A stretch of DNA of 64,000 bases from Isurus oxyrinchus (taxonomy: Eukaryota): NCBI GenBank assembly GCA_026770705.1, contig JANJGN010000189.1, positions 310,001-374,000 of the forward strand, given 5' to 3'. How positions within the stretch are numbered: the first letter of the stretch is position 1; every line of letters begins with the position of its first letter. The position numbers and the translations under genes are program-made. The notes under the pieces are model-generated. The model did not search any database. It was not told where the DNA came from and worked only from the letters and a program-made list of their open reading frames with translations. Shown here piece by piece: positions 1,060 through 56,466 of the stretch.

Positions 1060-1199
1060 TCAAACAGTCTGTCGACTTCCTTTCACTGTTTGTCTCTCCC
1101 AGACACAGACTCCAGTGATAGTGATAACCACAGCCACAAGGAATATCACAGCTCGTATTCCCAGGATCAGGATCACGTGCAGAATCTCTCCTCCACTGT
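1060..1199 (-). CDS. Gene A terminal TM exon: (Y)SGGEILHVILILGIRAVIFLVAVVITITGVCVWERQTVKGSRQTV*
   Basis: Acceptor ttctctag at 1200-1201, phase 1; hydrophobic helix with an internal Arg; short Tyr-free tail; TGA at 1060-1062. Confidence 0.85.
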
Positions 1200-2862
1200 C
1201 TAGAGAACACACAGAAAGAAATCATCACTGACTCTCCACTTTCAATCTCTCACTCTGGCTGAACAATCAAGCTTCATAACACTGCAACATTTGCTGTAAT
1301 ATTGACCCATCCACTGGGATTCAATGTGGAATGAATGTTTTCATTGTAAACACTCCAAGAGTGGACAATCGGAACTTTCCCCTTAGCGTGGAACATTGGT
1401 GAGAATGGATCATTGTGCTGTTGGACTCCCTGTCCAATGTTTCTCTCCATCGCTGTGTACAGGATTGTGCTGTAGAAAATTCTGGAAATGTTTAGTGCAG
1501 GGTGGAAATCCATCTCGGATGCGTGTGCGAATCGGGCAGGATCGAGATGGACTCCCCCACGGACTTACACACCCCGCTAAATAAACAGTTCCAATCTTTA
1601 CCCAGAGAGAGGGGAGAATGTGGAACTCACTCCCACTGGGAATGGTTGAGGTGAACAGTATCGATGTATTTAAGGGGCAGGAGGGTCGGTAACCAGAGGG
1701 GCACAGATTGACGAACCGGAGGGGGAGATGAGGAGAATTTGTTTTGACAGAGCGAGTTGTTGTGATCTGGAAGGTGCTGCCTGAAAGGGTGGTGGAAGCA
1801 GATTCAATAGGAACTTTCAAAAGGGGAATTGGATAAACACTTGAAGGAGGAAGATGGGGGCAAAGTGGAGTGGTGGTTAGTGGATCTGATTGGATAGAAC
1901 ATTGAAAGACCTGGCACAGGCACAATGGGCTGAATGGCCTCCTCCTGTGCTGTATCATTCTCCGCTTCCATGATCTCTCCCCCAGTCAGTAACCACTCCA
2001 GATCCCTCTTGAAGGTGACAGAGAAACAGCAACCACCACACCCACTGACAGCACATTCCCGAGGATCACTACTCTCTGGGAAAAGATGAACTCCCCAACA
2101 TCCAGCCTATTCCTGCTTCCCGGAGAGTGTAAACACTTCAGGGAGGTGCTGAGGAAGTTCTCAATAAAATGAATTATCAAATCTACCATTTGAGAAATAA
2201 TTGAATTCCGATGAACTCCCAGCTTGTGTAGCAAACTGGGAAGTAGATTTGCTTGAAAAGCTGGGAAACACAAGGATTAAGTGCTACAATGCCACCACTG
2301 GTGGGAGGCTGTAACTACAGTGTGACGTTTACATAGGCAGTCATCACTATAAACAGGGGCTTTGGACATAATGGGCACGGAAATAGTGAGAACAGGATGT
2401 AAGCTTTTCATCAGCAGGAATTCTCTTACTAAACCTCTCCACCTCTCTCTTACTCTCAGATTCACAAAAAAATCACAGAATCAGATAAAGAGGAGTTGGG
2501 ACTAGTTATTCGTCAAAGGGTTAGGTTTCAGGTAGCTCCTTAAAGGGAGAGAGAGAGTTGGAGAAGCAGAGAGTATCTATGAGTGCCTCTATGCATCTGA
2601 GTGTTTGTACGAGTAATTTCCATATTCTTCCATAAATATGAATGGGAACACAAATCCCAGAATTCAGCCCACGCTCCAGTGCAGTACTGAGGGAGGTCAG
2701 ATAACCCATGAGGGAGTCTTGTGCTAGTGTGTTTGTTTGTGAGTGTGTCTTTGTGTGTGGTCATATATGTGTGTCTGCACGTGTCTATTTAGGTCTGTAC
2801 GTTTGAGGGTGTTTGTGTAGTATTCGAATCTGAGAGAGATGTTGAAGTCTGTGTACACTCAC

Positions 2863-3015
2863 ATTCCACAGTAATGGTTATGAACCCCTCCACTGCTCCA
2901 TGTTCATTCTCTGCCACACACTGATAGTCTCCAGTGTCCCTGGATGTAACGTGAGGAATCAGCAACCACAGCTCATTGTTGGAACTTCTTCTGTTCATTT
3001 GGACATTCAGATGTC
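2863..3015 (-). pseudogene. Gene A 5'-truncated C2-set Ig exon (..MNRRSSNNELWLLIPHVTSRDTGDYQCVAENEHGAVEGFITITVE)
   Basis: Near-identical to the 3' half of exons 13854-14135, 14615-14896 and 46580-46861; GTGAGT donor kept; homology ends abruptly at ~3015, removing the first Cys and the acceptor. Confidence 0.85.
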
Positions 3016-3538
3016 ATGGCAGGAATCAAGAACCCCGTTCGCACGATTACCAACAGAAAGTGAACAACAATTTATACTTAATGGAAAGACAGTGCTGATT
3101 GGTTGGCAAGTGGTCTCTGATAGGTGGAGGTGTTGCCGTGGAGAATGCTGTTTGCGATATGAGAAGTTTAGACAGCTTGTCTCTTCATTCAGCAATAATC
3201 ATATAAAGATCAATTAACTTCTATCGACTGTGAAGCACTTTGAGTGGCCTGAGAATGTGGATACTGAGAACGGGCTGCACTGTCAGAGGGTCAGCGCTGA
3301 GGGAGTGCTGATGTAGAATGAAAGATGTCGGTACAGTTAATGCTTTTCATCATTGATATTAAAGTGATTTTTAGAGGTTGCTTTGGGACTGAACTGGAAG
3401 CTATCACCAGGTTATTGAGAATCAGACAGTGTGTTATAATAAGCTGTGTTTTGTGTTATTATGTAAACGTCACAGTTTGTGTTATTTCCCATTGAGTGTT
3501 GGATGTGAATTGTTGAGTAATTATAACACAGCACTTAC

Positions 3539-3912
3539 CAGAAACGTGAAGCTGGGTTACAGGATAGTAGCTGTAACTATTCCTGCTGTCAAACTCTATT
3601 CTGAAAAAATAAGGTCCTGCATCTTCCCGTCTGATGTTGTTTATAATCAGGGAACAGTCACCATCTTTCAGGTCTCCAGACAGCCGGGTACGATGGCGGA
3701 ATCTTTGATCCCTGTGATTGTGACCCTCGGAGTGAAAGGCTATAGACCATTTAGGCTGTGGGTTCCCATCTATTCCTTTCAACCAGATTCTGCACGTGAT
3801 CTCCCTACGAAATTTGATAAGTAACTGTAATGACATGGAATCTGTACACATGAACCTTCCTGTGCTGTCACCTCTCATGGAGTGTCACCTTTCCACTCTT
3901 GTGACAGTCCAA
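3539..3912 (-). pseudogene. Gene A Siglec V-set exon, disabled
   Basis: Siglec motifs CVQIPC, GDCSL, DAGPYFFR. Acceptor AG>CG (3913-3914), CGA>TGA at 3875-3877, 1-nt deletion near 3790 (exon 374 nt versus 375/369 in the paralogues). Confidence 0.9.
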
Positions 3913-4615
3913 CGGGGGAGAGAAATATCAATATTTGACTCTGGATGGTTTGTAGATCCACTAGACTCGATATCCACCCCCTCCATCACTGGGGCACAGT
4001 GGCTGCAGTGTGGACCATCTACAGGACACACAAGGAACTCCCCAAGGTTTCACAACAGATAGAAGAGAATCCTGGACACAGGAGTGGACAAGTTCATTCT
4101 ACATTGGCTCATGGTCCTCAGGACCCTGTTTAGTGAAGCCAGTCTTCCATCCAACACAGTGTCTACAAGATACACAGGGAAACTGTGTAAATATCTCATC
4201 TCTCAACACTGAATGGGCTGAGCTTCAGTTTAACTTTCAGTATTTTTAAATTTCCATATTGTGGTTGCTATGGTGAAACTGTGCAGGAAGTGTGAGGGCT
4301 GGACTCTCTGTCTATTCTCACTGCAGCTGTGATGTGGTCGTGGTGATTCTCAGTAAAATGAAACCCTCTGATCTCCTCCATCGCCGAGGTTTAGGGAGTG
4401 AATTCCAGAGCTCAGGTCCCAGGCAGCTGTAGGCACGGCCGCCAGTATTGGAGTGATGGGAATTGGGGGATGGTCAAGAGGCCAGATTTGGAGTAACACA
4501 GAGATCTGGGAAGTTGATTGGTTGCATTGCAGGAGGTTACAGAGATAAAGAGATAAGAATGATCTTTTACAAAGACTGTTAAATATAAATCTGTCCAAGC
4601 TGACGATGATATTAC

Positions 4616-4694
4616 CTTGGAGAAGTGACAAGAGGAAGTAGATTTCCCGATCATTGTCCACTCCCAGATATTCCATCCACTTCTCACTCTCAAG
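4616..4694 (-). CDS. Gene A leader exon (..IYFLLSLLQ|G)
   Basis: ctctttcacag acceptor and CAAG|gtaat donor; ends like the gene B leader (ISLLQG). ATG at 4676 is in frame; ATG at 4654 (MIGK) is 1 nt out of frame. Confidence 0.65.
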
Positions 4695-4939: not shown

Positions 4940-5320
4940 AGAAAGATGTTCTGTACAACAGACTTGAGTCTCACACCCAGATCTCAATAATCAGTAGAAA
5001 TCTTTCAAAGGCATCAATCATTGGAATCTGTCTTCATAAAGTCACAACATCAACAAAGGACGGTGTTGGTGGTGGAAGTGAATTCCAATCGTTCCGTTAC
5101 TTACCCAGGACCTGTCCGACTGCTCGCCTGGGGAGGAACTGCCCACACGCTCTGCTTGGGCTGAATGACCTCTTCCTGTGCTGCTCCCTCTGTGTATTTA
5201 ATGAGAAAGGGTTGATGTGTGTCTGTGAGTCAAAATGAGGAAGTTGGATCAAAGTGACAGACCAGCTCATGTTTTGAGATGTTGGTGAACTGTTAACCCT
5301 TTGTGTCCTGACCCTGTGTT
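4940..5320. repeat. ~380-bp block duplicated at 11521-11915 (partial third copy 5735-5960)
   Basis: Direct sequence match starting agaaagatgttctgtacaacagacttgag; contains the 85-nt exon-like unit. Confidence 0.9.
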
Positions 5321-5474
5321 GATATTTCTGCTCACAGGTGGACAGTCATTGACCAGGAGTTTCTCCTGTGGGTCAGTGGGTTTCACAGCCAAATTCAGGG
5401 GGTCAGAATGTTGTGGGATTCAAGACCCCATTCAGGGGACGTCTGCCCCACAGAGTAGACTGAAACTGCCCAGC

Positions 5475-5672
5475 GTCAGTCCTGAGGGAGTGCTGCACTG
5501 TCGGATGGTCATTACTGCACTATTGTAAGGTCAGTACTGAGGGAGATCTCCACTGTTTGAGGGTGAGTACTGAGGGAGTGCTGCACTGTCAGAGGGACAT
5601 TAATCAGGGAGTGCTGCAATGTTGGAGGATCAGTACTGAGGGAGTGCTGCACTGTTGAAGGGTCAGTATTAA
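5475..5672 (+). repeat. 33-bp tandem array
   Basis: About 6 units seen directly. Confidence 0.85.
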
Positions 5673-5994
5673 GGTGCTGATTTACAAGACAGGACAATGG
5701 ATTAGGAGCCCTCAGAACTCCCCCCGTGATTTCCAATCATTCCGTTACTTACCCCGGACCTGTCCGACTGCTCGCCTGGGGAGGAACTGCCCACACGCTC
5801 TGCTTGGGCTGAATGACCTCTTCCTGTGCTGCTCCCTATTTGTGTTTAATTAAAAAGGGTGGATGTGTCACTGTGAGACAAAATGAGGAAGTGCTTGGTA
5901 CCAAGTGAGAAAGATGCTCTTTGCCTCGCACTGTTAGAAAACTGTTAACCCTTTGCGTGCCAAGAATGTTTTTGAAGGGCCATTGACTGTTCAC

Positions 5995-6485: not shown

Positions 6486-6489
6486 TACA

Positions 6490-9192: not shown

Positions 9193-9309
9193 TTATAAAT
9201 TCCCATAAACAGAATCCTTGGCAAATTCACAGTTTGCGTAAAGATCATCATCTGTATCAGGATTGACTCCGCGGTTAGATTTCATTTCCAGATCCTTCTC
9301 ATCTTTCTT
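9193..9309 (-). CDS. Gene B terminal cytoplasmic exon KKDEKDLEMKSNRGVNPDTDDDLYANCEFAKDSVYGNL*
   Basis: Strong acceptor tttctattacag; phase-0 frame gives two tyrosine motifs, then TAA at 9193-9195. Confidence 0.75.
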   Translation of the reverse strand, partial: KKDEKDLEMKSNRGVNPDTDDDLYANCEFAKDSVYGNL

Positions 9310-12300
9310 CTGTAATAGAAACAGAAATGATCAGAGTGACAATCAGAGTGATCAGTGTTTAGTATTATTGATCCAAATCAAAAAATTCCATCCACAGTAG
9401 AGACATTAATTATTGATACTGAACGGGGTTTGATTATTGATCCTGAACGATGTTTGATTATTGATTCTGAACGGGGTTTGATTTTTAATTCTGAACGGGG
9501 TTTGATTATTGATTCTGAAAAGGGTTTGATTATTTATTCTGAATGGGTTTTGATTATTGAATCTGAACGGAGTTTGATTATTGATCCTGAACGTAGTTTG
9601 ATTATTGATACTGAACAGGGTTTGATTATTGATTCTGAACGGGGTTTGATTATTGATACTGAATGGGGTTTGATTATTGATACTGAACGGGGTTAGATTA
9701 TTGATACTGAACGGGGTTTGATTTTTAATACTGAACGGGGTTAGATTATTGATACTGAACGGGGTTTGATTTTTAATTCTGAACGGGGTTTGATTATTGA
9801 TTCTGAACGGGATTAGATTATTGATACTGAACAGGTTTGATTTTTAATTCTGAACAGGGTTTGATTATTGATACTGAATGGGGTTTGATTATTGATACTG
9901 AATGGGGTTTGATTATTGATTCTGAAAGGGTTTTGATTATTGAATCTGAACGGGGTTTGATTATTGATCCTGAACGAAGTTAGATTATTGATATTGAACG
10001 GGGTTTGATTATTGATATTGAACGGGGTTTGATTATTGATTCTGAACGGTGTTTGATTATTGATCCTGAACGGAGTTTGATTATTGATACTGAATGGGGT
10101 TTGATTATTGATTCTGAACAGTGTTTGATTATTGATTCTGAACGGGGTTTGATTATTGATACTGAACGGTGTTTGATTCTTGATTCTGAACTGGGTTTTG
10201 ATTATTGATTCTGAAAGGGGTTTGATTATTGATTCTGAATGGGGTTTGATTATTGATACTAAACGGGGTTGGATTATTGATACTGAACGGGGTTTGATTA
10301 TGTATACTGAACGGGGTTTGATTATTGATTCTGAACGAGGTTTGATTATTGATACTGAGCGGGGTTTGATTATTAATTCTGAACGGGGTTTGTTTATTGA
10401 TACTGAACGGGGATTGATTATTGATTCTGAAAGGGGTTTGATTATTGATACTAAACGGGGTTGGTTTATTGATACTGAACGGGGTTTGATTATGTATACT
10501 GAACGGGGATTGATTATTGATTCTGTACGCGGTTTGATTATTGATTCTGAACGGGGTTTGATTATTAATTCTGAACTGGGTTTGTTTATTGATACTGAAC
10601 GGGGATTGATTATTGATTCTGAATGGGGTTTGATTATTAATTCTGAACAGGGTTTGATTATTGATACTGAACGTGGTTTGTTTATTGATACTGAACGGGG
10701 ATTGATTATTTATTCTGAAAGGGGTTTGATTATTAATTCTGAACGGGGTTTGATTATTGATACTGATCGGGGTTTGATTATTGATTCTGAACAGGTTTTA
10801 TTATTGTTACTGAACGGAGTTTGGTTATTGATACTGAACGGGGTTTGATTATTGATTCTGAACGGGGTGTGTTATTGATTCTGAACGGGGTTTGATTATT
10901 GATTCTGAACGGGGTTTGATTATTGATTCTGAACGGTGTTGGGTGTGAGTTTGGTTGGGTTTGGGAGTGACTGTATAAAACATTGCAGATACAGGAGTGG
11001 AGCAGCCATATCAATAACCAGGCTACTGGAGCAGCTGAGAGGCTGGGGATCCTGTGGTGTGTGACTCACCTGATTCCTCAAAGCCCAACCACGCTCACAG
11101 TTTTCATAAACAGGACCTCGATATTCATCAACACGGTGGTTCGATTTGATTCCTGCTTTCCCCTCACCTCTCTTCCGAAATAGAGATGGAAATGGACAGA
11201 ATGACAATCAACATGATGTGTATTCGGTGTTGGGTTTGATTATTGGGGAGAGAGTTCCAGATTTCCACTCCCCTTTGTGTGAAGAAGTGCTTCCTGACAT
11301 CACCCCTGAACGGCCTGGCTCCAATCTAAAGTTCCAGCCCCCTTGTTCTGGACTCCACCCGACCCCCACCACCCACCCCCACCCGAGGGAATAGCTTCTC
11401 TCTATCGACCCTATCGAGTGTTTAATCAGTTTGAACCCCTCAATTAGATCCCTCCTAAATCTTCTAGACCCGAGTGAATATAATCGTAGACTGTGTGTAA
11501 CCTGTCTGCATAATTTAACCAGAAAGATGTTCTGTACAACAGACTTGAGCCTCACACCCAGATCTCAATAATCAGTAGAAATCTTTCAAAGGCATCAATC
11601 ATTGGAATCTGTCTTTATAAAGTCACAACATCAACAAAGGACGGTGTTGGTGGTGGAAGTGAATTCCAATCGTTCCGTTACTTACCCAGTACCTGTCCGA
11701 CTGCTCGCCTGGGGAGGAACTGCCCACACGCTCTGCTTGGGCTGAATGACCTCTTCTTGTGCTGCTCCCTCTGTGTATTTAATGAGAAAGGGTTGATGTG
11801 TCTCTGTGAGTCAAATCAGGAATTGGGGAACAATTGTGAAAACCCTTTCATTGAAACGTAGGGCCTTAGTGTTGTGTTGTTAACAAACTGTTAACCCTTT
11901 GTGTCCTGACTCTGTGACGTGATTCCTGTGTAAAGCTGAGCAGTCGGTGAGCGAGTTTCAATTCACTGCTCACTCCAGGTGTTGAGGTGGATCTTCTGAA
12001 GGAGCAGATGTTGCTCAGCGCTCCTTAAAAATGTGAGAGACTGAACAACGTGTAAGAGGACGAGAGAAAGAATGAGAAGGAGAGCATTAGTGGAGATAAG
12101 AGAGAGTGAATGAGAGAGAGAGAGAATGAGAGAGAAAATGAGAAGGCGTGCATTAGTGGAGGTAAGAGAGAGAGTGAATGAAACATGGAAAAAGGAAAGA
12201 GATTGCATTCACTAACAAAAGAAAGGTTTTCATTTATATCGCACCTTTCACAAACTCAGGAGGTCACAAGGTATCTTATGGTCCGGGTCAACCCTGCCAG

Positions 12301-28648: not shown

Positions 28649-28691
<43 letters not shown>

Positions 28692-43600: not shown

Positions 43601-46600
43601 TTATAATATTTATCAATATAATCTATGTAACATTTATATATAATTTTTATCCATTTAATTTCTGTAATATTTATATATAATGTTTCTCGATTTAATCCAT
43701 GTAACATTTATATATAATATTTATCAATGTAACATATGTAACATTTATATATAATATTTATCCATTTAATCTGTGTAACATTTATATATAATTTTTATCA
43801 ACGTAATCTATGTAACATTTATATAAAATGTTTCTCGATGCAATCGATGTAACATTTATATATAATATTTATCAATGTAATCTATGTAACATTTATATAT
43901 AATGTTTCTCGATGTAATCTATGTAATGTTTATATATAATATTTAGTCGTTTGGGAGGAGAACCTGAGTATTGCTGAGAAAGGACATTTTGTCAAAGCTT
44001 TCTGTCTTGCACCCAATGAAGCAGCTTATCTGGGGGAGAGGGTTCCAGATTTCCACTCCCCTTTGTGTGAAGAAGTGTTTCCTGACATCACCCCCTGAAC
44101 GGCCTGGCTCCAATTTGACCAAGTGTTGCCATTGTCACATGAGGTCAGGTGATTCAAAGCTTGGTCAAAGGGTTATGTTGTAAACAGCATCTTAGAGGAG
44201 GTAGAGAGAGAGGTGGAGTGGTTGAGGGAGGGAATTCTCGAGTTTAGGGATCAATCCAGCTGAGTGGAGATCGATCCTGAGCGAGTCTCTCACCTTTGAC
44301 CCACAGATACATCTTGAACATGGCTTCCCCATGTGGGTTTTGAACCGAGCAGGATGCAATCACTCCCCCCTCATCCTGGGGTCTCATCAGGGTGAGGAAA
44401 CCAGTCACCAGATGCCCATCTCTGACCTGCCACGACACAAAACCTCCGTGTGTTTGGTTACCACTGATGTTCGCACTGGGCAGGTGCCAGGTGAGGTCTC
44501 CGGGTGGGTTGGAGGTGGCCACACAGACGCAGGTGACCCCCTCTGATCTCCGAGTGCACTCCGACTGCTGGGAAATCTCCGGCTTATCTGAGGAGGGAAG
44601 GACAACAATGAGACAACGTCATAGCAAAGTTAGAGCGTAAGATAGAATCTTCACACTGAAACACTCATTCCTGCCTTTGTTACCTCTGCACTCAACTATC
44701 CCAACACTCTCCTGCCCGACCTCCCATCTTCCACTCTCCGTAAACATCAGCTCATCCCAAACTCTGCTGTCCCCATGTCCTAACTCACACCGAGTCCCGT
44801 TCACACATCACTCCCTGTTGGTCACTGAGCTACACTGGCTCCCGGTCCGACAATACCACAATTTTAAAATTAACATCGTTTCAAATCCCTCCTTACTCCC
44901 TCCCTATCTCTGTAACCTCCTCCAGAACCTTCAACCCTCCCTATCTCTGTAACCTCATCCAGCCGCTTCAACCCTCTCTATCTCTGTAACCTCCTCCAGC
45001 CCCTACAACCTTCCTTATCTCTGTAAACTCCTCCAGCCTCTACAACCCTCCGAGATCTCGATGCACCTCCAATTCCAGCCTCTTGACCTTCCCCCGATTC
45101 CTATCGCTCCACCATTGGCAGCCGTGCCTTCAGCTGCCTGGATCCTAACCTCTGGAATTCCCTCCCTCATTTCTCACCTCCTTCGGACAAAATCTGACCA
45201 CCATCAAAAGCATCTTCCCTTCACCCCCACCCCGTTGGCATTCCACAGGGATCATTCCCTCCAGGACACCCTGGTCCACTCCTCCATCACCCCTAGCACC
45301 TCAACCCTCTCCGATGACATCTTCCCATGTATTTGCAGAAGGTGCAACACCTGCCCCTTTACTTCCTCCCCCCTCACTGTCCAATGACCCAAACACTCCT
45401 TCCAGGTGAAGTAGCGCTTCATGCAGACTTCCTTCAATATAATCTACTGCATTCATTGCTCCCAGTGTGGTTTCCTCTACATTGGAGACACCAAACACAG
45501 ACTGGGTGATCGCTCTGATGAACACCTTCGGTCTGTCCACAAGCATGACCCAGACCTCCCTGTCGCTTGCCATTTTAACACCCCACCCTGCTCTCTTACC
45601 CACATGTCCGTCCTTGGCCTGCTGCATTGTTCCAGTGAAGCCCAACGCAAACTGGAGGAACAGCACCTCATCTTCCGACCAGGCACTTTACAGCCTTCCG
45701 GACTGAATATTGAGATCAACAATTCCTGGTCATGAACTCTCTCCTCGATCTTCACTGCTTTTTGAACTTTTTTTTATGTATTCATTTTAATTGTTTTATT
45801 TGTTAACTGTTTTCCACTTATTTTTATTATTACTATTTGAAATTCATTTCCATTTTTCTTGATTGTTTTATCCGCAGATTTTAGTCTATTTTCGATCTTT
45901 ATTCCCTCCACCGTCCCCTCCCCCTGCCACACCCCCACGAGGGCCATCTGTCTCTTTCCAGAGTGCTTACCCTGGTCCGCCCATTATCACACTCTGCTTA
46001 ATGTCACCATTAGCACCTCCTTTATCCAATACCACCACTGTTAACAACCCTTTGACCTTTTGTTTATGACATCTTCCACAATCTCTCCATTGCCTCCACC
46101 TATCGCTGGTTTTCTATCCAGCTCCACCTGTCCCATCGCCCCCCCTTAGACAGGATATATTTCACCACATGTCTACTTCCCTTTAGCTCTGAAGAGGAGT
46201 CTTACGGACTCCAAACGCTAACCCTGTCTTTCTCTCCACAGATGCTGCCAGATGCTCAGAATCAGCTGGATGGACAGAAAGACCAATGAGTGGCTTAGAT
46301 CAAGAGGAGAAGTTCAGCAATTAAAAGGGTTGTTCAGGACAGTTAGAGAGAGAAAGGTCGTCAAGTACGGAGATTGGAAACGAAGACCTGACAGCCTTGT
46401 CCTGACAACCATTGAAGGAGAAACTGAGAGCAAAAACAGAAAGGGAGAGGAAAAATTGGGTGTGTGGATAACGTGGACTGAGCGAGGATTGAAGAAAACT
46501 GGATTAAAAACAACACGATCCCAATGGCTCCACGGAGACCACAGAGACAACAAACAAACAAATGTATCTCCACACTCACGTTCCACAGTGATGGTTATGA

Positions 46601-49600
46601 ACCCCTCCACTGCTCCATGTTCATTCTCTGCCACACACTGATAGTCTCCAGTGTCCCTGGATGTAACGTGAGGAATCACCAACCACAGCTCATTGTTGGA
46701 ACTTGTTCTGTTCATTGGGACATTAAGATGTCGCCACGTCAGGTTAGAAGCTGGGAAGCTCTCGACAGAGCAGATTATCACTGCAGAATTCCCCTCAATT
46801 ATATTGATCGATGAAGCGTTAATCATATCAAGAGAAGTAATTGAGAGATTCTGTGGTGCATCTAAAAATATATAAAGATTTTAATGTGAGCAAACACAGT
46901 GCACAGCAAAACTTCCTGTATCTTCTCGCTGTAACTGATGCCTGTGTGCATTTCTAGGCACCCTCTCTCAAGATAAGTTCCTATGTCACATTTACAATGG
47001 GCACTGCCTATGTAAACTGTCACACTGCAGGAGCATTCTCCCACCAGAGACCCTGCCCATCCAGATTTAAAGAAACAGCCTTTCACATCCTCAGAATGTC
47101 CCCAAGGGCTTGACAGGCAATGAATTATATTTGATCGATGGAGCACTGAGGGGTAAATCTACAATTCTCTGTTCAGGAGGTTGCTCATCCAATTCAGGGT
47201 CTTGTTGATCTGGAGTTTACCTTCCTTCAGCACAGAATCGGAGCTGACACCGAGACTCCAGTGCAGCACTGAGAGAGGAGAGGGAACTCATGTGTGTATG
47301 TGTGTGTGTGTGTTTGTGTTTCTGTACAAGTGAGTGTGTTTGTGTGTGTGTATGTGTGTGTGTGTGTGTTTGTGTTTCTGCACAAGTGATTNNNNNNNNN
47401 NNNNNNNNNNNNNNNNNNNNNNNNNNNNNNNNNNNNNNNNNNNNNNNNNNNNNNNNNNNNNNNNNNNNNNNNNNNNNNNNNNNNNNNNNNNNNNNNNNNN
47501 NNNNNNNNNNNNNNNNNNNNNNNNNNNNNNNNNNNNNNNNNNNATGTGCGTGCTTACGTGTGTGTGTGTGTGTGTGCATGTGTGTGTGCGTGTGTGTGTT
47601 GTGTGTGTGCACGTGTGCGTGTGAATGTGCGTGCTTACATGTGTGTGTGTGTCTGTTGGTGTGTGTCTGGTCTGTGTAACCTGTAAACCTAACCCTTCCA
47701 CACTGATGGTCACAAACATCCCCCACTACCAACAAATTTATCTCAGTAAGGAACATGGCACTGCCAACCTCGTCAATACCATCTTCTAAACAGGGGATTG
47801 GGTAGGAATCTGGTTTTATTGCTGCATTAACCTTGCTGTAATCTATGCAGAATCTGGTTGGAAATGAAATACCTGCTCCTTTTTACCTCCCTCCCTACGA
47901 TGGTATCGTTTTAACATATTGATGTGTCACAGCCGATTCTTTATTCTACAATCTGGGGTGTCTATCAAATAATTTACTTGACCAACCCTCCTAATTACCT
48001 TGTAGGGACCACTGAACTGCGCTTTCAGAGGCTCCCCCTGCCAAGGCAATGATACTAACAAGTCATCCCCCTGGTTGAGATGTTCGGGTCACAGCTTGCC
48101 TGTCTGCCCCATTCCTTCATCTCTGTTTGAGAAACTATAAGATGTTCTTGTGCCACTTTGGAGGCTCCCATGAGCCGTTCCTGAAACATGGACATATCAT
48201 CTGAAATAGAGGATTCATCCCTCTGTCCGGAATATCTTTCTTTGATGTATTTCAGACAGCCTCTTATCTCGTGTCCATAAGTTATTCCAAAAAGACTAAA
48301 ACCTACCGATTCAGTTGGTGAATCTTGTGTGGGAAATACAAGAAAATCCAGTCCTTTGTCCCAGTCATGGGGAGTTCATGACAATAGCTTCAATCATTGT
48401 TTTGAGGGTTTGTTGGTCCCTCTCTAAAGATCCCTGTGTCTATGGATGATATGCTGCGGACTTTAACTGTTTTATACCCAAATTACTCATTATGTTCGGA
48501 AAATTTTAAGACATAGAGATGGAACCTTGATCTGACTGGATCTCCAGCGGTAATCCATAATGGGTAAAAAAATTGGGTTAACTTCCCTATTCCTACTTTA
48601 GCTGTAATTGTTCCTAAAGGGATGGTCTCTGGAAATCGATTTGTCATATCCATCATAGTAAGGCCATACTGGAGTCTGGCTTTCATTTTCGATAATGGTC
48701 TAACACAGTCCACTAATGCTCGTATCCAATGATAACGGACAATTAGCTCACTGGAGGAGGGGAATCCACAAATATCCCCATCCTCAATGAAGGGGGAGCC
48801 CAGCACATCAGGGCAAAAGATAAGGCTGAAGCATTTGCTACAACAATTATCCATTTCTGTCTGGCGTAAAAATAAGTCAGGAAATGGTGCTCAACCAGGG
48901 CTTACAAAAGAAATTAGGGATAGTATTAGATCCAGAGAGGAGACATAAAATTGCCAGGGGAAGCAGCAATGCTGAGGATTGGGAGCAGTTTAGAATTCAG
49001 CAAAAGTGGACAAAAAGATTGATCAAGAAGGGGAAAATGGAACATGGGAGTAAACTTGCAGGGAACGTAAAAACCGACTGTAAAAGCTTCTATAAATATG
49101 TGAAGAGAGAAAGATTAGCAGTGACCGATGTAGGTTCCTTGCAGTCAGAAAGGGGGGAAATTCTAATGAGAAACAAAGAAATGGCAGAAGAACTGAACAT
49201 ATATTTTGGTTCTGTCTTCACAAAAGAGGACACAAATAATTTCCCAGGAATGTTAGGGAACCAAGTGTCTAGTGAGAGGGAGGAATTGAAGATAATCAGG
49301 ATTAGTTTTAAAAAATGAATCTGGAGAGATTAATGGGTTAAAGGTTGAACAGTCCCCAGGGCCTGAAAATCTACATCCCAGAGACTAACGGAAGTGACCC
49401 TGGAAATATTGGAAGCACTGGTGGTCATCCTCCAAAATTCTATAGGCTCTGGAGCAGTTCCTATAGATTGGAGAGTGGCAATTGTAACCCCACTATTTAA
49501 AATAGAAGGGAGAGAAAAATCAGAGAATTACAGACCAGTTAGTCTAACATCAGTCATGGGGAAAATGCTAGAGCCTATTATATAAGGTGTGCTAATGGAA

Positions 49601-52600
49601 CGCTTGGAAAGCTTTAATGGGATTCGACAAAATCAGCATGGGTTAATGAAAGGAAAATCATGGTTAACTAATCTATTGGAGATTTTGAAGATGTAACGAG
49701 TAGAATAGATAAGGGATAACCAGTGGATGTGGTGTATTTAGACTTCAAGAAGGCTTTTGATAAGGTCCTACATGAGGCTAGTGCGCAACATTAAAGCCCA
49801 TGGGATTGCGGGTAATTTACTGGCATGGATTGAGAATTGGTCGATAGACAGGAAACAGAGGGTCAGAATAAATTAGTCTTTATCTGAGTGGCAGGCGGTG
49901 ACTAGTGGTATACCACAGGGATCCGTGCTTGGGACCTAACTATTCATGATATATATAAATGACTTGGGTGAGGGAGCCAAGTGCAATATTTCCAGGTTTT
50001 CTGATGACACAACGCTGGGTAAGGGTGTGAGCTGTGAGGAGGATGCAAAGAGGCTTCAAGGCGATTTAGACAAGTTGTGTGTGTGGGCAAACACATGGCA
50101 GATGATGTGGATGAATGTGACATTGTAGGCTTTGGTGTGAAAAACAGAAAGGCAGAGTATTATTTAAATGGTGATATATTGCGAAATGTGGATGTACAAA
50201 GGGATCTGGGTGTCCTTGTGCACTAGCCAATGAAAGTAAACAGGCAGGTGCAGCAAGTAATTCGGAAGGCAAATGGTATGTTGGCCTTCATTGCAAGAGG
50301 ATTTGTGTTCAGGAGTAGGGATGTCTCACTGCAGTTATACAAGGTCTTGGTGAGACTGCACATGGGGTACTACGTGCCGTTTTGGTCTCCCTCCCTAAAA
50401 AAGGATAGACTTGCCGTCGAGAGAGCGCAGAGAAGGTTCTCTAGGCTGATACCAGGGGCGGCAGGACTGTCGTATGAGGAGAATTGGTACGACTGGGTCT
50501 GTATTCACTAGAGTTTAGAAGAATGAGAGGAGACCTGAATAAACGTAAGAAATTCTAACAGAGATAGACAGACTGGATGGAGGGAGGATGCATCCCTTGG
50601 TTGGGGAGTCTAAAACCAAGGGCGACAATCTCAGGATACAGGACAGGCCATTTTGGACTGAGATAGGGAAACATTTCTTCACTCAGAGGGTGGTCAATCT
50701 GTGGAATTCTCCATCACAGAGGCTGTGGAGGCCGGGTCACTGAGTGTATTCAAGAAAGAAACTGATAAATATTTTGATATTAGGGGCATCAAAGGGTACG
50801 GAGAGAAAGCGGGAATAAGGCTTTGAGATAGAGGGTCAGCCTTGATCATATTGAATGGCGGAGAAGGCTTGAAGGGCTGAATGTCCTAATCGTGCTCCTA
50901 GTTTCTATGTACCTAGGTATCTATAGAACTATCTCTCTCCGTGTTCTATTCTCATGTGACCTTGAGTAATTAATGATAAATACTATCTATTTACATTGTT
51001 AATATTAAACTTTTATACTACATCTCCCCCAAAATCTTTGACATCAATGAAGACAATATTTATATTATCCTATATTGTCTTTTAAGTTCAACCTTGGCCC
51101 CCTCTGCCTTATCAGGTAGGCATAAACAATCCCAAGGCTTAATACAGGAAGAGCTCTCCCTGGTCAATATCACTAATAAAAAAGGACCTGTTTTGTCTTC
51201 AACCCAGTGATGTTTGTGGGATCTTGCTCTGCACATTGTATCCTATTACAGCTAATATAGAATCAAGGGTGTCAGTACTTACCTTGTACAGTTAGTACAA
51301 GGGTCCGCTCCGATGAAACAGATGGATATCTCACTCTGCAGCAGAGAGTGTGTCCGTGGTGTTTGAGTGATGGGGTCAGGGTCAGAACAGAAGTATAGGT
51401 CAGAGTGACACCATGCTGAGTTACAGTGTTTGAGACTGATCCAGGTACGTCAGTGGGAGTGTCCCAGGTTAAGACAGGTGCAGCTGTTCCATTGCACGTT
51501 GTGTTGAAGGTGCAGCTTACATCCACACGCTTTCCTGCAATAATTTCAGCAGGGAATATCGTGGGTTTATCTGTGAAATCTAACAGACAGAGAATGGATC
51601 CTTTTAGAGAAATATAATGTGAAGCATCAGTTCAGATAGAAACCACAGTCCCACAAGAGAAAGCACTTTTACAAGGATGATATGAGAACTGAGAGGTTAC
51701 AATGATCAGGAAAGATTTTCTTGCTCTTTGGCAGTAGTGTTTCTGTCTCTCAGCTTAATACACGTTCACTCCGAGACATGTGAATTGAGAATACTGGATG
51801 AGAGAAGAGGCTGAGACCAGAGATTGGAGTTAAAAGCAGAATACTGTGGATGCTGGAAATCTGAAACAAAAACAAAAATTGCTGGAAAGACTCAGCAGGT
51901 CTGACAGTATCAGTGGAGAGGAAGACAGGGTTAACGTTTCGAGTCCGTATGACTCTTCATCAGACCAGAGGTTTGAGTTCACTGGCTTCTCATTTCCTCA
52001 GTGATCTGGGTGATTTATTACATTGTGGTTTGTTGGATCTTGCTGTGCACAAACTGCCTGCTGTGTTTTACATCTGTGACTACAATTCAGGAATAATTTC
52101 ATTGGCTGTGAAGGGATTTGGATCCTCCTGAGGTGGTAAATTGCGCTGCAGAAATGCACATCTTTCTTTTATCGATACGTCAGACTTTTAAACAGGACAG
52201 GAGAGATTGATGGGAGTGGTAACCTGATAATACAGTTAATGCTTTTCATCATTGATATTAAAGTGAGTATTAGACGTTGCTTTAGGACTGAACTGGAAGC
52301 TATCACCAGGTTATTGAGAATCAGACAGTGTGTTATAATAAGCTGTGTTTTGTGTTAATATGTAAATGTCACAGTTTGTGTTATTTCCCATTGAGTGTTG
52401 AATGTGAATTGTTGAGTAATTATAACACAGCACTTACCAGAAACGTGAAGCTGGGTTACAGGATAGTAGTTGTAACTATTACTGCTGTCAAATTCTATTC
52501 TGAAAAAATAAGGTCCTGCATCTTCCCGTCTGATGTTGTTTATAATCAGGGAACAGTCGCCATCTTTCAGGTCTCCAGACAGCCGGGTCCGATGGCGGAA

Positions 52601-55600
52601 CCGTGGTAACTCGTGACTGTGATCCTTGGAGTGAAAGGCAATAGGAGCCCAGGGAATCTGTTTCTCATTATTAAACCAGACTCCACCTCGCGGTTGGTTT
52701 TCCAGACACGATGGATAACTGTAATGACAAGGAATCTGTACACACGAACCTTCCTGCGCTGTCACCTCTCGTGGAGTGTCACCTTTCCACTCTTGTGAGG
52801 GTTCAACTGGGGAGAGAAATCTCAATATTTAACTCTGGATGGTTTGTGGATCCACTAGACTCAACTTTACAGATGAGGCTGAATTGGGGGGATGGTTAAT
52901 ACTGAGGAGAATGGCAACAAATTATTTTGGCAGGATGAATAGAAAAACAGAATATTATTTAAATGGAGACAGGCTGCAGAATGCAGGACAGAGGGATCTG
53001 GGTGTCCTTGTACATGAATCACAGAAAGTCAGCATTCAGGAACACCACGGAATGAGGAAGGCAAGTGGAATGTTGGCCTTTATTGCAAAGGGATGGAGTA
53101 TAAAAGGAGGGAAGTCTTGCAACAGCTGCACAGGGTGAGATTGTATCAGGAGCAGTGTGTACAGTTCTGGTCTCCTTACTTAGGGAGGGATAGACTCTGC
53201 ATTGGAGGCAGTTCAGAGGAGGTTCACTGGGCTGATTCCTGGGATTAAAGGGTTTGTCCTGTGAGGAAATGGTGAGCAGGTTGGGCCTGTATCCATTGGA
53301 GTTTAGAAGAATGAGGGGTGACCTTATTGAAACATATCCGATTCCGAGGGGGCTTGACAGGGTGGATGCTGGGAGGATGTTTGCCCCTCGTGGGGGAATC
53401 TAGAACCAGGGAGCACAGTTTCGGAATGAGGACTCTCCCATTTAAGACTGAGATGAGGAGGAATTTCCTCTCTCAGAGGGGCGCTAGCCTGTGGAATTCT
53501 CTTCCCCAGAGAGCAGTGGAGGCTGGGCCATTGAATAGACTCAAGGCTGAGTGAGGCAGGTTTTTGATCGACAAGGGAGTCAAGGGTTTGGGGGACAGGC
53601 AGGAAAATGGAGTTAAGGCCACAACCAGATCTGCGAGAGTAGGCTCGGGGGGCCGAATGGCCTGCTCCTGTCCCTATTTCTTATGTTCCTACATTCTTAC
53701 CTTCTTGAAATATTAAAGCTGCAGAATAAACATGCAAGTGACTGACCTGCTCGACCCACCTTCCATCTGGGTGTCCCATGGGGAGGACCCTTCCTGAGCC
53801 AGATCCACCAGCCAACATGGTCTGGATCTGAGCACAGGAGACACGGGGGGGTGTGACTAACAGGCTCCTTGTGACAGGCCCCGTCTGTCCAATGGCTGGC
53901 TTTCAGCTGCCAAGGCCAGAGTGGTCCTTGCTAAAACCGGCTCAGGACAGGTCAGGACACCTGTGCAGACCCCCTCCAGCGCTGCAGCCTCTGTACAAAC
54001 CCCTCATGCGCTTGTGGAGAGACACAAACAAGGCTGCACATTACCGAGGAGAATCCCCTCTACGGACTAAGGGGCTGACTCATCACCTTAAACTCAGCAA
54101 ATGAGGAGGCTCTCACTCGGTATCGGGACTTGGCATTCACTCAATAAAAATAATCAAATGACATTTTGGTCAGAAATCTAAGGAGGTTGTACATTCCCTC
54201 AAAAATAAGACTCAAGCTGGGGTCGAGGGTCAAAGGGCAACAACTTATATTTACACAACAACTTGAACATGACAAATCACCCCAAGGTGCTACACAGGAG
54301 CGTCATAAAACAAAGTATGTCACCCAGACACATGTGGAGATATTAGCGACAGCTGGCCAGAAGAGGACGGTGTTATGGAGAATCTTCAAAGAGGGATGAA
54401 ATGGATAGAGAGAGAGAGAGAGAGGGACGGAGAGGGGTTGAGGGAGGGTATTACAGAGCTTGGGCCCCAGGCAGCTGAAGGCACGGCCGCCGATGTTGGA
54501 GTGATGGGACCGGGGGATGGTCAAGAGGCTGGAATTGGAGGAGAGCAGAGACCTCAGAGGGTTGGAGGGGCTGGAGGAGGTTACAGAGATAGGGAGGGTT
54601 GTAGTGATTGGAGGAGTTACAGAGATAGGGAGGGTTGTAGAGGCTGGAAAATTGAAGAGAGATTGGGAGAGTGTAGGGTATGGAGGAGTTTGCAGAGCTA
54701 GAGAGGTTTGTAGTGGCTGGAGGAGGTTGCAGAGATTGGTAGGTTTGTTGGGCAGGATGATTTTACAGATATAGGGAAGCGGTGGAGGCTTGAAGAGGTT
54801 ACAGAGAATGGGATGGTTGTAGGTACTGGAGGAGGATGAGGAGATTACAGGGATAATGAGGAAACAAAGATGAAAATTGTGACATTGAGACTTTGCTTGA
54901 CCAGGAGCCAGTCTCGGTCATCGAGCAGAGCGGGTGATGAGGGAACGGGACTTGGTGTGAGTAAGGACGTGGTCAGCAGTTTTGGATGGCCTCAAGTTTA
55001 TGGAGTGTAGAGCGTGTTGTTGGAACAGTCGAGTCTGGAGGTAATGAAGGCGTGGATGAGGGTTTCAGCAGCAGATGAGCTGAGACAGGGTGATGTCGTG
55101 CGATGTTACGGAGGTGGAAATAGACGGTGTTAGTGAGGGCGCAGATGTGAGGCCGGAAGCTCATCTCAGGATCAAATGGGACAACAAAGCTGTGAACAGA
55201 TTGGCTTCAATCTCAGAGAGCTGCCAGGGAGAGGAATGGAGTTGGTAGCGAGGGAACAGAGTTTGGAGTGGGGAATGAAGACAATGGCTTCAGTCTTTCC
55301 AATATTTAATTGGAGGGAATTTCTGCCCATCCAGTACTGGATGTCGGATAAGCAGCCTGATAATTTAGCAGCAGTGGAGGAGTCGAGAGAGGTGGTGGTG
55401 AGGTAGAGCTGGGGATCCTCAGTGGACAGGTGAAAACTAACAGTGTTCAGATGATGCTGCAAAGCCATTGCAAGTGATTCTCTGGCTACGATGAGATGGA
55501 TAAGAATGGAGCCAGGGGAGAGCAGTCCCACCCAGCTGGACAACAGTGGAGAGGTGTTGGAGGAGGATGGTGTGGTCGAGCATGTCAAAGGCTGCAGACA

Positions 55601-56466
55601 GATCGAGAAGGACGAGGAGGGAAAGTTGACCTTTGTCACAGTCACACAGGATGCCATTTGTGACCTTGATAAGAGCTGTTTCAGCACAGTGGCTGGGGTG
55701 GGAACCTGATTGGAGGGATTCAAACATGGAGTTCCGGGAAAGATGGGAACGGATTCGGGAGATGGAAACACGTTCAAGGACTTTGCAGGGGAAAGAGAGG
55801 CTGGAGATGGGACGGGGGTTTACACGGACAGTGTGAGGGGTGGAAGGTGTAGTGGGGAGGAGACACTTCACTCAGGGGGGAGGTGTCATCACCCCTCAGC
55901 TCGGTTTACGTTACAGCTATGATGTGGATTCAATCACACACAATAAGCTCATGGATCTGGGAGCAGAAATAGACAAATCATTAAAAATAGTGACGCTGGT
56001 TAACACGGCCAAAAAACAAGCAAATCAAACACTATTATTTCCCATTGAGTGTTGAATGTGAATTGTTGAGTAATTATAACACAGCACTTACCAGAAACGT
56101 GAAGCTGGGTTTCAGGACGGTCGTTGTATCTATTCCTGTTGTCAAATTCTAGGCTGAATAAATAATATCCTGCATCTTCCCGTCTGACATTGTTTATAAT
56201 CAGGGAACAGTCACCATCTTTCAGGTCTCCAGACAGCCGGGTCCGATGGTGGAACCTTATTAACTTGCGATTGTGATTCTTGGAGTGAAAGGCTATAGAC
56301 CGTTCATTCCATGTTTCCCAATTCCTTCTCATATACCAGAATCCGACTGGTGATCTCGCTACTAAATATGATGGATAACTGTAATTACATGGAATCTGTA
56401 CACACGAACCTTCCTGCGCTGTCACCTCTCCTGGAGTGTTGACTTTCCACACTTGTGATAGTCCAA
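37411..56466 (-). CDS. Gene C: Siglec-like (CD33-related/MAG-like) inhibitory receptor, (V)-V-C2-C2-C2-TM-ITIM-ITSM; leader exon not found in window
   Basis: Exons 56092-56466, 52438-52806, 51283-51579, 46580-46861, 44294-44587, 42911-43007, 42107-42188 or 39220-39301, 37411-37659; all open and phase compatible. Confidence 0.8.
39220..39301 (-). CDS. Gene C middle cytoplasmic exon, distal copy
   Basis: 82 nt, phase 2 to 0, RKTAMEERVSGTRDIALTPSSLCVKHQ; ttgcag and gtacag sites. Confidence 0.8.
40491..40739 (-). CDS. Gene C proximal terminal exon with premature stop at the ITIM tyrosine codon
   Basis: 249-nt paralogue of 37411-37659; TAC>TAG at 40587-40589; downstream TEYAQI still recognisable; AATAAA (minus) at 39919-39924. 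Confidence 0.8.
42107..42188 (-). CDS. Gene C middle cytoplasmic exon, proximal copy
   Basis: 82 nt, phase 2 to 0, RKTAMEERVSGTSDIALSPSSLSVKHQ. Confidence 0.85.
42911..43007 (-). CDS. Gene C TM exon GRDSSKWTVGLFTAGIMLSVFLAGIFIFICVRK
   Basis: tttttacag acceptor, gtaagt donor, uncharged helix. Confidence 0.92.
43540..43945 (+). repeat. 37-bp AT-rich minisatellite (~11 units)
   Basis: TATGTAACATTTATATATAATATTTATCAATGTAATC in tandem. Confidence 0.9.
44294..44587 (-). CDS. Gene C membrane-proximal C2 exon (MAG D5 / CD33-related Siglec type)
   Basis: KPEISQQSEC..VTCVCVATSNPPGDLTW..SCSVQNPHG four-Cys pattern; 294 nt, phase 1-1. Confidence 0.9.
45190..46250 (+). mobile_element. Penelope-like element fragment
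   Basis: NIIYCIHCSQCGFLYIGDTKHRLGDRSDEH, a GIY-YIG endonuclease motif. Confidence 0.85.
46250..46560 (+). mobile_element. RTE-type LINE 3' fragment
   Basis: MLRISWMDRKTNE motif. Confidence 0.55.
46580..46861 (-). CDS. Gene C C2 exon shared with genes A and B
   Basis: 282 nt; 4 mismatches versus 13854-14135 by manual comparison. Confidence 0.92.
47715..48725 (-). mobile_element. Gypsy (Gmr1-type) pol remnant, integrase upstream of RT
   Basis: VDCVRPL..RFPETIPL..SAAYHP (integrase) at 48.7-48.4 kb precedes RFCIDYSKVNAAIKPDSYPIP (RT) at 47.86 kb. Confidence 0.75.
48880..50910 (+). mobile_element. CR1 LINE ORF2 fragment, degraded
   Basis: ENYRPVSLTSV, YINDL..FSDDT, LYKVLVRLH. Confidence 0.95.
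51283..51579 (-). CDS. Gene C Siglec domain-2 C2 exon
   Basis: FTDKPTI..SCTFNTTCNGTAAPVLTW..LTLTPSLKHHGHTLCC; 297 nt, phase 1-1. Confidence 0.92.
52438..52806 (-). CDS. Gene C V-set exon V1 (essential Arg present, YFFR)
   Basis: 369 nt, intact splice sites, Siglec Cys pattern. Confidence 0.93.
52862..53690 (+). mobile_element. CR1 3' fragment
   Basis: QRDLGVLVHESQK..FKTEMRRNFLSQR. Confidence 0.9.
54235..55850 (-). mobile_element. L2-type LINE fragment
   Basis: RPISSLSFPCKVLER, ETALIKVTN, LLVLLDLSAAFD, LQLNIGKTE. Confidence 0.88.
56092..56466 (-). CDS. Upstream V-set exon V2 (Arg replaced by Ser, YYLFS)
   Basis: 375 nt, intact ccgtag and gtaagt sites, open frame, paralogue of V1. Confidence 0.88.

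Follow-up and report, generated by a model that had tools for sequence, protein, structure and literature searches.

The DNA analysed here, hereafter the window, is a stretch of 64,000 nucleotides from the shark Isurus oxyrinchus (GenBank assembly GCA_026770705.1, contig JANJGN010000189.1, positions 310,001 to 374,000). It contains three tandem loci of Siglec type, gene A (1-4.7 kb), gene B (9.2-24 kb) and gene C (37.4 to at least 56.5 kb), all of which lie on the minus strand, the strand that also carries every immunoglobulin (Ig)-like open frame of interest in the window. A first-pass annotation of this sequence had described three same-strand genes with four different signalling ends. Its exons were all recovered at or close to their listed positions, with matching splice phases, and every piece of the four ends is indeed present on one strand. 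The count was nevertheless overstated, as gene A is a relic and the supposed tyrosine-less end is a TAC-to-TAG change in the first of two tail cassettes. The data show how the exons are laid out, which lesions they bear, how gene B is spliced and which modules are combined in related species. We consider it likely that the three loci belong to a Siglec-like family of sharks and rays and comprise an inhibitory-type gene with a premature TAG (C), an expressed chimera (B) and a decayed activating-type copy (A), with exons re-assorted among paralogues.

Gene B is intact. Its leader exon (23897-23942) encodes MGEVGLILIFISLLQ and matches the N-terminus of the RefSeq protein P0226 of the basking shark Cetorhinus maximus (MGVVGLILIFISLLP). 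It is followed by a MAG-like V-set exon, V' (22720-23076), which is 92% identical to P0226 and reads YYFYVDVEG, with a Tyr placed on the Arg of the MAG sequence YYFRGD, and by two further Ig exons, D2' (20345-20632; C2-set_2 type, 88% identical to P0226, with an alternative acceptor at 20623) and D3' (19579-19836). Next come two copies of a C2 exon that recurs in all three loci (C2a, 14615-14896; C2b, 13854-14135), a transmembrane (TM) exon (12491-12587; RDSNEWKAGLLGAGICLSVGLSGFFIFKCVRK), two cytoplasmic exons, cyt1 (11686-11770; GSSTRRGHSAQAERVGSSSPGEQSDRYW) and the cassette exon cyt2 (11070-11174; KRGEGKAGIKSNHRVDEYRGPVYENCERGWALRNQ), and a tail exon (9193-9309) that ends in DTDDDLYANCEFAKDSVYGNL and a stop codon. 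The cytoplasmic domain as a whole reads KCVRK-GSSTRRGHSAQAERVGSSSPGEQSDRYW-KRGEGKAGIKSNHRVDEYRGPVYENCERGWALRNQ-KKDEKDLEMKSNRGVNPDTDDDLYANCEFAKDSVYGNL, followed by the stop.

The splicing of gene B was examined over positions 9150-14950 in contigs of four public runs, which come from four studies and two coded organisms. The joints 9309/11070, 11770/12491, 12587/13854 and 12587/14615 have GT..AG ends on the minus strand, and the joints 11174/11686 and 11174/12491, the latter from run X1, show CC..AC ends. C2b is joined to the TM exon in three runs (X1, X6 and X7) and C2a in one; the TM exon is joined to cyt1 at 11770 in two (X5 and X6), and cyt2 is joined at 11070 to the tail acceptor at 9309 in two (X6 and X7), with loose ends at the same acceptor in a third (X1). 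C2a and C2b (14615 to 14135) are joined exactly in one run, with a single stray letter at the joint, and in another run the two exons meet at a junction where a few letters differ. Upstream of C2a, a contig of run X7 continues past 14896 with a loose end whose 29 letters equal window positions 19579-19607, the 3' end of D3', which proves the splice from D3' to C2a and thus that the mosaic of gene B is transcribed and not misassembled. The contigs therefore confirm all junctions of gene B from D3' to the tail, and they reveal cyt1 and cyt2 as two additional cytoplasmic exons, both of which are also present in the RefSeq proteins P0177 and P0159; cyt1 is found in P0018 as well. Skipping of cyt2 keeps the reading frame and skipping of cyt1, as seen in X1, breaks it.

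Several other readings of this region were rejected on the same evidence. A direct splice from the TM exon to the tail through a phase-0 GTGAGA donor at 12499 does not agree with the joints, which use the phase-2 donor at 12491 together with cyt1 and cyt2. The STGRGHSAQAERVGSSSPGEQSDRS segment, which could have been a repeat wrongly exonised in one Chiloscyllium model, is part of the spliced cyt1 exon in the contigs and occurs in P0018 and P0177. A misassembly of gene B (the first-pass annotation had named misassembly of the mosaic as a possible refutation) is dismissed by the spliced contigs and by the lack of any gap in the gene. One contig of run X1 (loose end at 14613, matching 42995-43005) joins the shared C2 exon directly to the start of a C-type TM exon (AGAGACTCCAG), a product that none of the three loci predicts; it presumably comes from another paralogue, and is further evidence that modules are re-used.

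In gene C, the exon order is V1, V2, D2, shared C2 and D4, all of phase 1-1, followed by a TM exon and then by two cassettes that each consist of a cyt1 exon and a tail exon. V1 (56092-56466; 375 bp) has both an acceptor and a donor and is recognised by Pfam as V-set with an E-value of 3e-13, and V2 (52438-52806; 369 bp) is also a V-set exon and is 95% identical to the Carcharodon protein P0170. D2 (51283-51570) is a C2-set_2 domain 95-98% identical to Carcharodon RefSeq proteins, the shared C2 exon (46580-46861; Ig_3 or I-set type) is 98.6% identical to C2b of gene B, and the membrane-proximal Ig exon D4 (44294-44587) is 96% identical to residues 360-456 of Carcharodon P0161. The TM exon (42911-43007; RDSSKWTVGLFTAGIMLSVFLAGIFIFICVRK) ends in ICVRK at a phase-2 donor. 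The tandem arrangement of V1 and V2 is conserved: in a tree of V domains V1 groups with the first V domains of shark RefSeq proteins (support 100/96), among them those of P0003, P0161 and P0168, V2 groups with the second V domains of these three, and the RefSeq models place V1- and V2-type domains in one protein. Neither a motif scan, nor blastn with short words and the A and B leaders as queries, nor tblastn with eight N-termini from sharks revealed a leader exon in 52.8-64 kb.

Both tail cassettes of gene C are part of a tandem duplication, in which 37396-38479 and 40476-41541 are 80% identical and 38652-39911 and 41539-42800 are 95% identical. The first cassette consists of cyt1a (42107-42188; RKTAMEERVSGTSDIALSPSSLSVKHQ) and tail a (40494-40739), and the second of cyt1b (39220-39301), which lies in the 95% identical block, and tail b (37411-37659). 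Tail b reads AKLLYANINFSKLPGGDRTVHRSEDTEYAQIRFQKN up to the stop at 37411-37413, is 89% identical to the tails of Cetorhinus P0003 and P0226, and carries an immunoreceptor tyrosine-based inhibitory motif (ITIM), LLYANI, and a membrane-distal motif, TEYAQI, that resembles an immunoreceptor tyrosine-based switch motif (ITSM), an arrangement characteristic of CD33-related Siglecs. The tails of human CD33-related Siglecs have a similar pattern, LxYAxLxF ... TEYSE[IV]. In tail a, a TAG codon (40587-40589) stands at the first motif tyrosine, where relatives have TAC (Tyr), so that the exon reads PEEFL, stop, ANPQVLRMSSGDGSVHREVETEYAQIRFEHN, stop, with a relic of TEYAQI downstream.

Relatives of gene C suggest how its cassettes would be used. 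In the RefSeq proteins P0160 and P0203 of Carcharodon and P0197 and P0202 of Cetorhinus the two tails follow each other in series (TEYAQIR/RKTA ... KHQ/GKQNV), and P0203 hardly differs from the two cassettes of gene C. The internal donor used for this serial splicing, CAGATCAG followed by GTTC, also occurs in the window, at positions 40507 and 37427 and in the right phase, and its use would make tail exon a end at 40507. The tyrosine-less tail of gene C is thus best read as a nonsense mutation (TAC to TAG) in the first of two serial cassettes. Given the serial cassettes of the relatives and the TAG, the protein of gene C would end before any tyrosine motif unless cassette a is skipped, and the ITIM/ITSM tail would be made only in that case, if gene C is spliced as its relatives are. 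That the two cassettes serve as alternative endings under a splice switch is less likely, as the four RefSeq proteins string both together. Gene C therefore appears as a gene of inhibitory type that carries a nonsense codon.

Only the leader and the last exon of gene A are intact. The leader, at 4616-4676, encodes MEYLGVDNDREIYFLLSLLQ and agrees with the N-terminus of Carcharodon P0011. The V exon (3539-3912) is defunct: its acceptor AG has become CG (3913-3914), there is an in-frame TGA at 3875-3877, and one base pair has been deleted. The shared C2 exon survives as a 3' fragment of 150-190 bp (2864-3013 by its coordinates), which has kept its donor and has no acceptor, the 5' half having been replaced by unrelated DNA. 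The final exon (1060-1199), in contrast, has a good phase-1 acceptor and encodes SGGEILHVILILGIRAVIFLVAVVITITGVCVWERQTVKGSRQTV up to a stop, in which ILHVILILGIRAVIFLVAVVITITGVCVW is followed by ERQTVKGSRQTV; it has the basic residue in the TM segment and the short tail free of motifs (12 residues) of an activating-type receptor. With the C-termini of Carcharodon P0170 and P0174, whose order is V-V-D2-ArgTM, this Arg-TM exon shares 93% identity, and with RefSeq proteins of Scyliorhinus torazame and Chiloscyllium 78-82%, so that it is conserved at 78-93% across four shark genera. Gene A is therefore a decayed copy of a real and conserved activating-type gene. Within the window, the activating member of the system is thus dead and the inhibitory one bears a nonsense codon.

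The sharing of exons between the loci, as described in the first-pass annotation, was borne out in all its parts. Genes A and C have a common V family, with matching segments of 88% (3332-3968 against 52231-52862) and 86% (3482-4170 against 56035-56724) identity. One C2 exon is common to all three genes, its four copies being 96-98.6% identical, and the TM exons of B and C are about 80% identical in nucleotides. In the rest of the ectodomain B and C are very different, as their V and D2 exons have no alignable DNA and the V', D2' and D3' domains show only about 30% protein identity, compared with 97.5-98.6% for the C2 exons. The C2 exon also stands out from its surroundings: between C and C2b of gene B there are 4 differences in 282 exon positions against 64 in 436 aligned positions of the upstream intron (98.6% against 85% identity; Fisher p = 4e-11). 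Synonymous changes make up three of the four differences in the exon, in 3 of 93 codons. This contrast fits gene conversion or a recent transfer of the exon, with selection contributing.

The V exons are mosaics on a finer scale. Their 5' and 3' parts are 89-96% identical between copies (89-100% with the flanking intron) and the part encoding the C-C'-C'' segment only 56-68%. The dead V exon of gene A is nearer to V1 in mid-exon and nearer to V2 at the 3' end; compared with V2 of gene C, it is 92-96% identical at its two ends and 56% in the middle. In mammalian Siglecs it is the C-C'-C'' segment that sets ligand specificity. The pattern in the window looks like diversifying change or patchwork conversion in this segment.

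The re-assortment is clearest in the RefSeq proteins of lamniform sharks, in which V2-type ectodomains 91-95% identical to V2 of the window are joined to three kinds of signalling end. They are found with ITIM/ITSM tails in P0153, P0161 and P0003, with the Arg-TM exon (89-93% identical to that of the window) in P0170, P0174 and P0185, and with the TM exon and tail of B type in P0163, P0176 and P0177, the last of these ends also occurring in P0018 on a more distant V domain (72%). In the RefSeq proteins of Carcharodon, V2-type domains of this similarity occur with both ITIM and Arg-TM ends. The V-domain tree has one V2 clade in which proteins of all three tail types are intermingled, and V2 of gene C, itself in a gene of inhibitory type, is nearest to an Arg-TM protein (95%). 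As for gene B, its V' is 92% identical to P0226 and 91% to P0218 of the basking shark, which unlike B have ITIM-type tails and run from D3' straight into a C-type TM exon, and its module of two C2 exons, TM, cytoplasmic exons and tail is also what makes up the 3' half of P0177. Gene B therefore looks like a fusion of a P0226-like 5' half with a P0177-like 3' half. Together, the module combinations in RefSeq, the V-domain tree and the spliced products of B support the claim of a paired Siglec system with mixing at the level of exons, which holds for the family more than for the three loci of the window.

Plain tandem duplication followed by decay, in which a single ancestral gene was copied, the copies suffered different losses, and the common exons reflect descent and purifying selection with no exchange, is an unlikely account of these data. 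It has in its favour that the duplicated blocks take in introns (V exons with their flanks, 86-88%; C2 exons with 450 bp of intron, 85-89%), that two of the three loci bear disabling lesions, and that the C2 domain is strongly conserved between species too. However, one duplication could not give B and C three different ages, about 30% for V', D2' and D3', about 80% for TM and 97.5-98.6% for C2; the basking-shark relatives of the B ectodomain go directly from D3' to a C-type TM exon and ITIM tail; the 3 synonymous differences in 93 C2 codons are fewer than an intron divergence of 15% predicts; and the mixing of tail types in the V tree is not what such a history would leave.

The loci are Siglec-like by several measures. 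When exons were searched individually against the databases, V2 of gene C found as its best solved structures in a phmmer search of PDB Siglec-5 (6e-16), MAG (1e-15) and Siglec-8, Siglec-7 and CD33 (about 1e-15 to 1e-14), followed by Siglec-10 and sialoadhesin, and the best match outside the Siglecs was pIgR at 1.6e-8. V' of gene B has MAG as its best solved structure (6e-15). Pfam recognised V-set, Ig_CD22, C2-set_2 and Ig_3 among the exons of the window, the exon after the V being C2-set_2 with E-values of 6e-8 in C and 5e-3 in B; on the TM and tail exons Pfam gave nothing meaningful. The cysteine pattern is also that of Siglecs, a CxxxxC in the B strand with a further Cys in the E strand (GSCVQIPC ... 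DCSLII in V1 and V2, SSCVVIPC ... NCSVRI in V'). In V2, GPYFFRIEF aligns on GSYFFRVE of Siglec-5, and the position of the Arg that binds sialic acid is thus occupied; the codon for this F-strand Arg is retained even in the dead V exon of gene A. The E-values of V2 to Siglec-5, MAG, Siglec-8, Siglec-7 and CD33 span no more than roughly one order of magnitude, and only CD22 and Siglec-15 are clearly more distant. Instead of a 1:1 orthologue of MAG, which would have told against the first-pass annotation, the comparison returned a tandem family of many copies.

The size of this family became evident in a HMMER scan with V2, in which 1417 proteins reached E<=1e-3 and 33 reached E<=1e-30. The RefSeq relatives number more than 120 and represent at least 20 elasmobranch species (sharks, rays and skates); their automatic names are Siglec-5, 7, 8, 10, 11, 12, 13, 14, CD33-like or MAG-like. 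The closest relatives of the window are those of Carcharodon carcharias (93-98% per exon) and of Cetorhinus maximus, and none of those retrieved was identical to it. The window therefore seems to be a piece of a large family of Siglec-like immune receptors that in these searches was found only in sharks and rays. Among the papers searched we found no description of such a family in sharks, apart from a passing mention in a whale-shark genome paper; it is visible in the automatic names of RefSeq.

It has to be asked whether these receptors still deserve the name of Siglecs. They might be Siglec-like in fold only, a lineage-specific Ig family that no longer reads sialic acid, for which 'paired Siglec' would be a misnomer. 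The canonical Arg is indeed lost in V1 of gene C, which has a Ser (YYLFSLEF), and in V' of gene B, with its Tyr, and the C-C'-C'' segment is poorly conserved between copies. We nevertheless give this view little credence: V2 and most of its RefSeq relatives keep the Arg of GPYFFRIEF and the Siglec cysteine pattern, and in the PDB search Siglec V domains were ahead of other V-set domains by more than 7 orders of magnitude.

A number of points weigh against our preferred reading of re-assorted tandem paralogues. The RefSeq protein models on which the module combinations rest are computer predictions. The leader of gene C is not in the window, and there is an assembly gap in the intron between its D2 and C2 exons. 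Identity between the window and the spliced contigs, which stem from two coded organisms, is 95-99%, and the contigs may represent orthologues, alleles or close paralogues of gene B instead of this very copy. In the window the acceptor of cyt2 reads GG (11175-11176), although the spliced contigs use this exon; this may be an allelic or species difference, an error in the assembly, or a sign that the exon is skipped in the window copy. Finally, the identity of the C2 exons could partly be due to purifying selection, since the domain has 84-88% protein identity even to Scyliorhinus and Mustelus.

The assembly gaps are six runs of N, five of them intergenic between C and B (27240-27384, 30685-30985, 31152-31473, 32278-32556 and 33278-33813) and the sixth (47392-47543) in the D2-C2 intron of gene C. 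All are clear of exons, and as the closest exon edge (46861) is 531 bp away, no reading frame of the window crosses a gap. Both flanks of the run at 33278-33813 have counterparts in a single intact repeat copy (18337-18610 and 18716-18963), arranged in the same order and orientation, which supports continuity across this N run only; its estimated length of 536 is probably too large, given that the matching blocks are 105 bp apart in the intact copy. That the mosaics are artefacts, misjoined or collapsed paralogues in a gapped short-read scaffold, is very improbable: although there are six N runs, one of them in an intron of gene C, the 96-98% identity of paralogous exons invites collapse, and public DNA-like runs contain at most 0.44 of the sampled words, genes A and B are free of gaps, the junctions of B from D3' to the tail were found exactly at the predicted sites in spliced contigs of independent studies, and the exon order of gene C agrees with RefSeq proteins of other sharks.

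The tail of gene B deserves separate discussion. It ends in DDDLYANC-x7-YGNL, and the cytoplasmic part as a whole has the tyrosine motifs YENC, YANC and the terminal YGNL. The motif D[IL]Y[AK][NS][CW]-x7-Y[GV]N[LIV], at the very C-terminus, has been preserved in Carcharodon, Cetorhinus, Chiloscyllium, Rhincodon, Mobula and Hypanus. The first-pass annotation had called this end ITAM-like (ITAM, the tyrosine-based activation motif of immunoreceptors). It is present and conserved, and its spacing and second half agree with the ITAM definition, YxxL/I-x6-8-YxxL/I, but its first half is YxxC, and the +3 position of that half is Cys (Trp in one species) in all six species compared. We therefore regard the tail as ITAM-like and not as an ITAM. 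All three tyrosines stand in a YxN context, which is the preference of the Grb2 SH2 domain. A word-based search for further tails of this type (with residues 392-516 of P0007, exact 5-mers being needed) gave three proteins, and is uninformative about absence.

With this in mind, one may speculate on a role for the tail. The YENC/YANC-x7-YGN[LIV] module, found from lamniforms to rays, could be an undescribed and self-contained tail, which would form an ITAM-like or Grb2-docking third arm beside the ITIM and Arg-TM ends. According to this speculation, gene B would represent a single recombination that turned an inhibitory, Arg-less, MAG-like receptor into an activating one, and paired Siglec-type signalling would be at least as old as the elasmobranchs or would have arisen independently of mammals. 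We put this forward as a tentative possibility, more doubtful than the re-assortment itself.

For ligand binding, signalling partners and the mechanism of recombination we infer the following model. Unequal recombination and gene conversion among tandem paralogues would re-assort ectodomain and signalling exons, giving rise to receptors displayed on the leukocyte surface. Those with V2-type domains may bind sialylated ligands through the F-strand Arg. The ITIM/ITSM tails would recruit SH2 phosphatases of SHP type, the Arg-TM form would signal through an adaptor with an acidic TM segment such as DAP12 or FcR-gamma, and the phosphorylated tail of B could dock SH2 proteins of Grb2 type (pYxN) or Syk type. 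A re-pairing of binding and signalling parts driven by pathogens has been proposed for primate paired receptors (PMC4042635, PMC5701461).

The window is repeat-rich vertebrate DNA, with tandem arrays of 33-bp, 24-bp and 43/44-bp units and fragments of long interspersed nuclear elements (LINE) and long terminal repeat (LTR) elements. A 33-bp satellite occurs in both orientations in the introns and spacers of all three loci (5472-5674, 15028-15917, 22228-22587, 25085-25739, 27623-28343, 37837-38028 and 40885-41066), the arrays scored having between 6 and 27 copies each, and each of the duplicated tail cassettes of gene C contains one such array. These arrays could be substrates for unequal recombination. 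A 24-bp array of 64 copies (86% matches; 9409-10940) takes up a large share of the intron that separates cyt2 from the tail exon of gene B. Reverse-transcriptase-like LINE fragments lie in the D3'-C2a intron of gene B (16000-18330), where the presumed fusion junction must sit, and in the D2-C2 intron of gene C (48480-50900). Upstream of V1 of gene C, direct repeats at 60557-60973 and 63418-63833, 92% identical, flank open reading frames, one of which (60269-60589) has a retroviral-type zinc-knuckle motif; this is likely an LTR retroelement, and its presence may be the reason that the window lacks the leader exon of C. Between the last exon of B and the leader of A there are two extra copies (4940-5363 and 5726-5958, 85-88% identical) of the segment that holds cyt1 of gene B. 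They translate to a sequence containing SSTGRGHSAQAERVGSSSPGEQSDRS and may be what is left of additional cytoplasmic cassettes or of a gene since lost.

The nearest relatives of the window genes are RefSeq proteins of elasmobranchs (for example XP_041037177.1 and XP_041037180.1, CD33-like, of Carcharodon carcharias, XP_078389734.1, Siglec-12 X3, of Cetorhinus maximus, and XP_072326180.1, Siglec-12, of Scyliorhinus torazame), which have the same exon types at 72-98% protein identity. V1, V2, D2, the shared C2, D4, two TM types, the Arg-TM exon, the ITIM cassettes and the B tail are all common to both. The combination in gene B, on the other hand, is absent from the proteins just listed, and among those retrieved V'-D2'-D3' is joined to an ITIM tail only (P0226 and P0218). 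The lesions of the window, the TAG in C and the dead gene A, are lacking in the RefSeq-predicted proteins. To this family the window adds a clear chimera with spliced transcripts and two cases of decay, one in the defunct activating copy and one in the inhibitory tail that has acquired a nonsense codon.

Among known Siglecs, MAG (Siglec-4; PDB 5LFR/5LF5) is the best solved-structure match of V' of gene B and nearly the best of V2. Its long form, L-MAG, ends in EYAEIRVK, which resembles TEYAQIRF in the window. Unlike MAG, the shark family has many copies, is arranged in tandem and diversifies rapidly, its members have other numbers of domains and other tails, and V' of B has a Tyr where MAG has the Arg.

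To our knowledge, the third signalling end of the family, the YENC/YANC/YGN[LIV] tail, has no counterpart in any mammalian Siglec. What would be new here is that receptors of the paired Siglec type have V domains in tandem, tail cassettes in series and this third, tyrosine-based end. According to a teleost-based study, fish genomes have no inhibitory CD33-related Siglecs and contain only Siglec-1, CD22, MAG and Siglec-15 (PMC7226832). Sharks and rays instead possess a large Siglec-like family that evolves fast and combines swappable exons into members of inhibitory, adaptor and tyrosine-tail type. The paired Siglec design would then either date to early jawed vertebrates or represent a striking convergence, and the family offers material on the origin of paired receptors by exon re-assortment, on the role of tandem V-set domains and on signalling by a conserved non-canonical tyrosine tail.

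In primates, the pairs SIGLEC5/SIGLEC14 and SIGLEC11/SIGLEC16 are neighbouring genes with similar V-set/C2 ectodomains and gene conversion between the partners, of which one has a tail with an ITIM and an ITIM-like motif and the other combines a charged residue in the TM segment with a short tail, and the activating member has often been lost or become a pseudogene (PMC4042635, PMC5701461). The shark loci resemble these pairs in that genes of inhibitory and activating type are neighbours and in that the activating member, gene A, has decayed. They differ in belonging to a much larger family of cartilaginous fish, in having two to three tandem V-set exons per gene, and in tail cassettes that are duplicated and, in the RefSeq models, spliced in series. 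They differ also in that the V domains of the would-be pair in the window diverge strongly in the C-C'-C'' segment.

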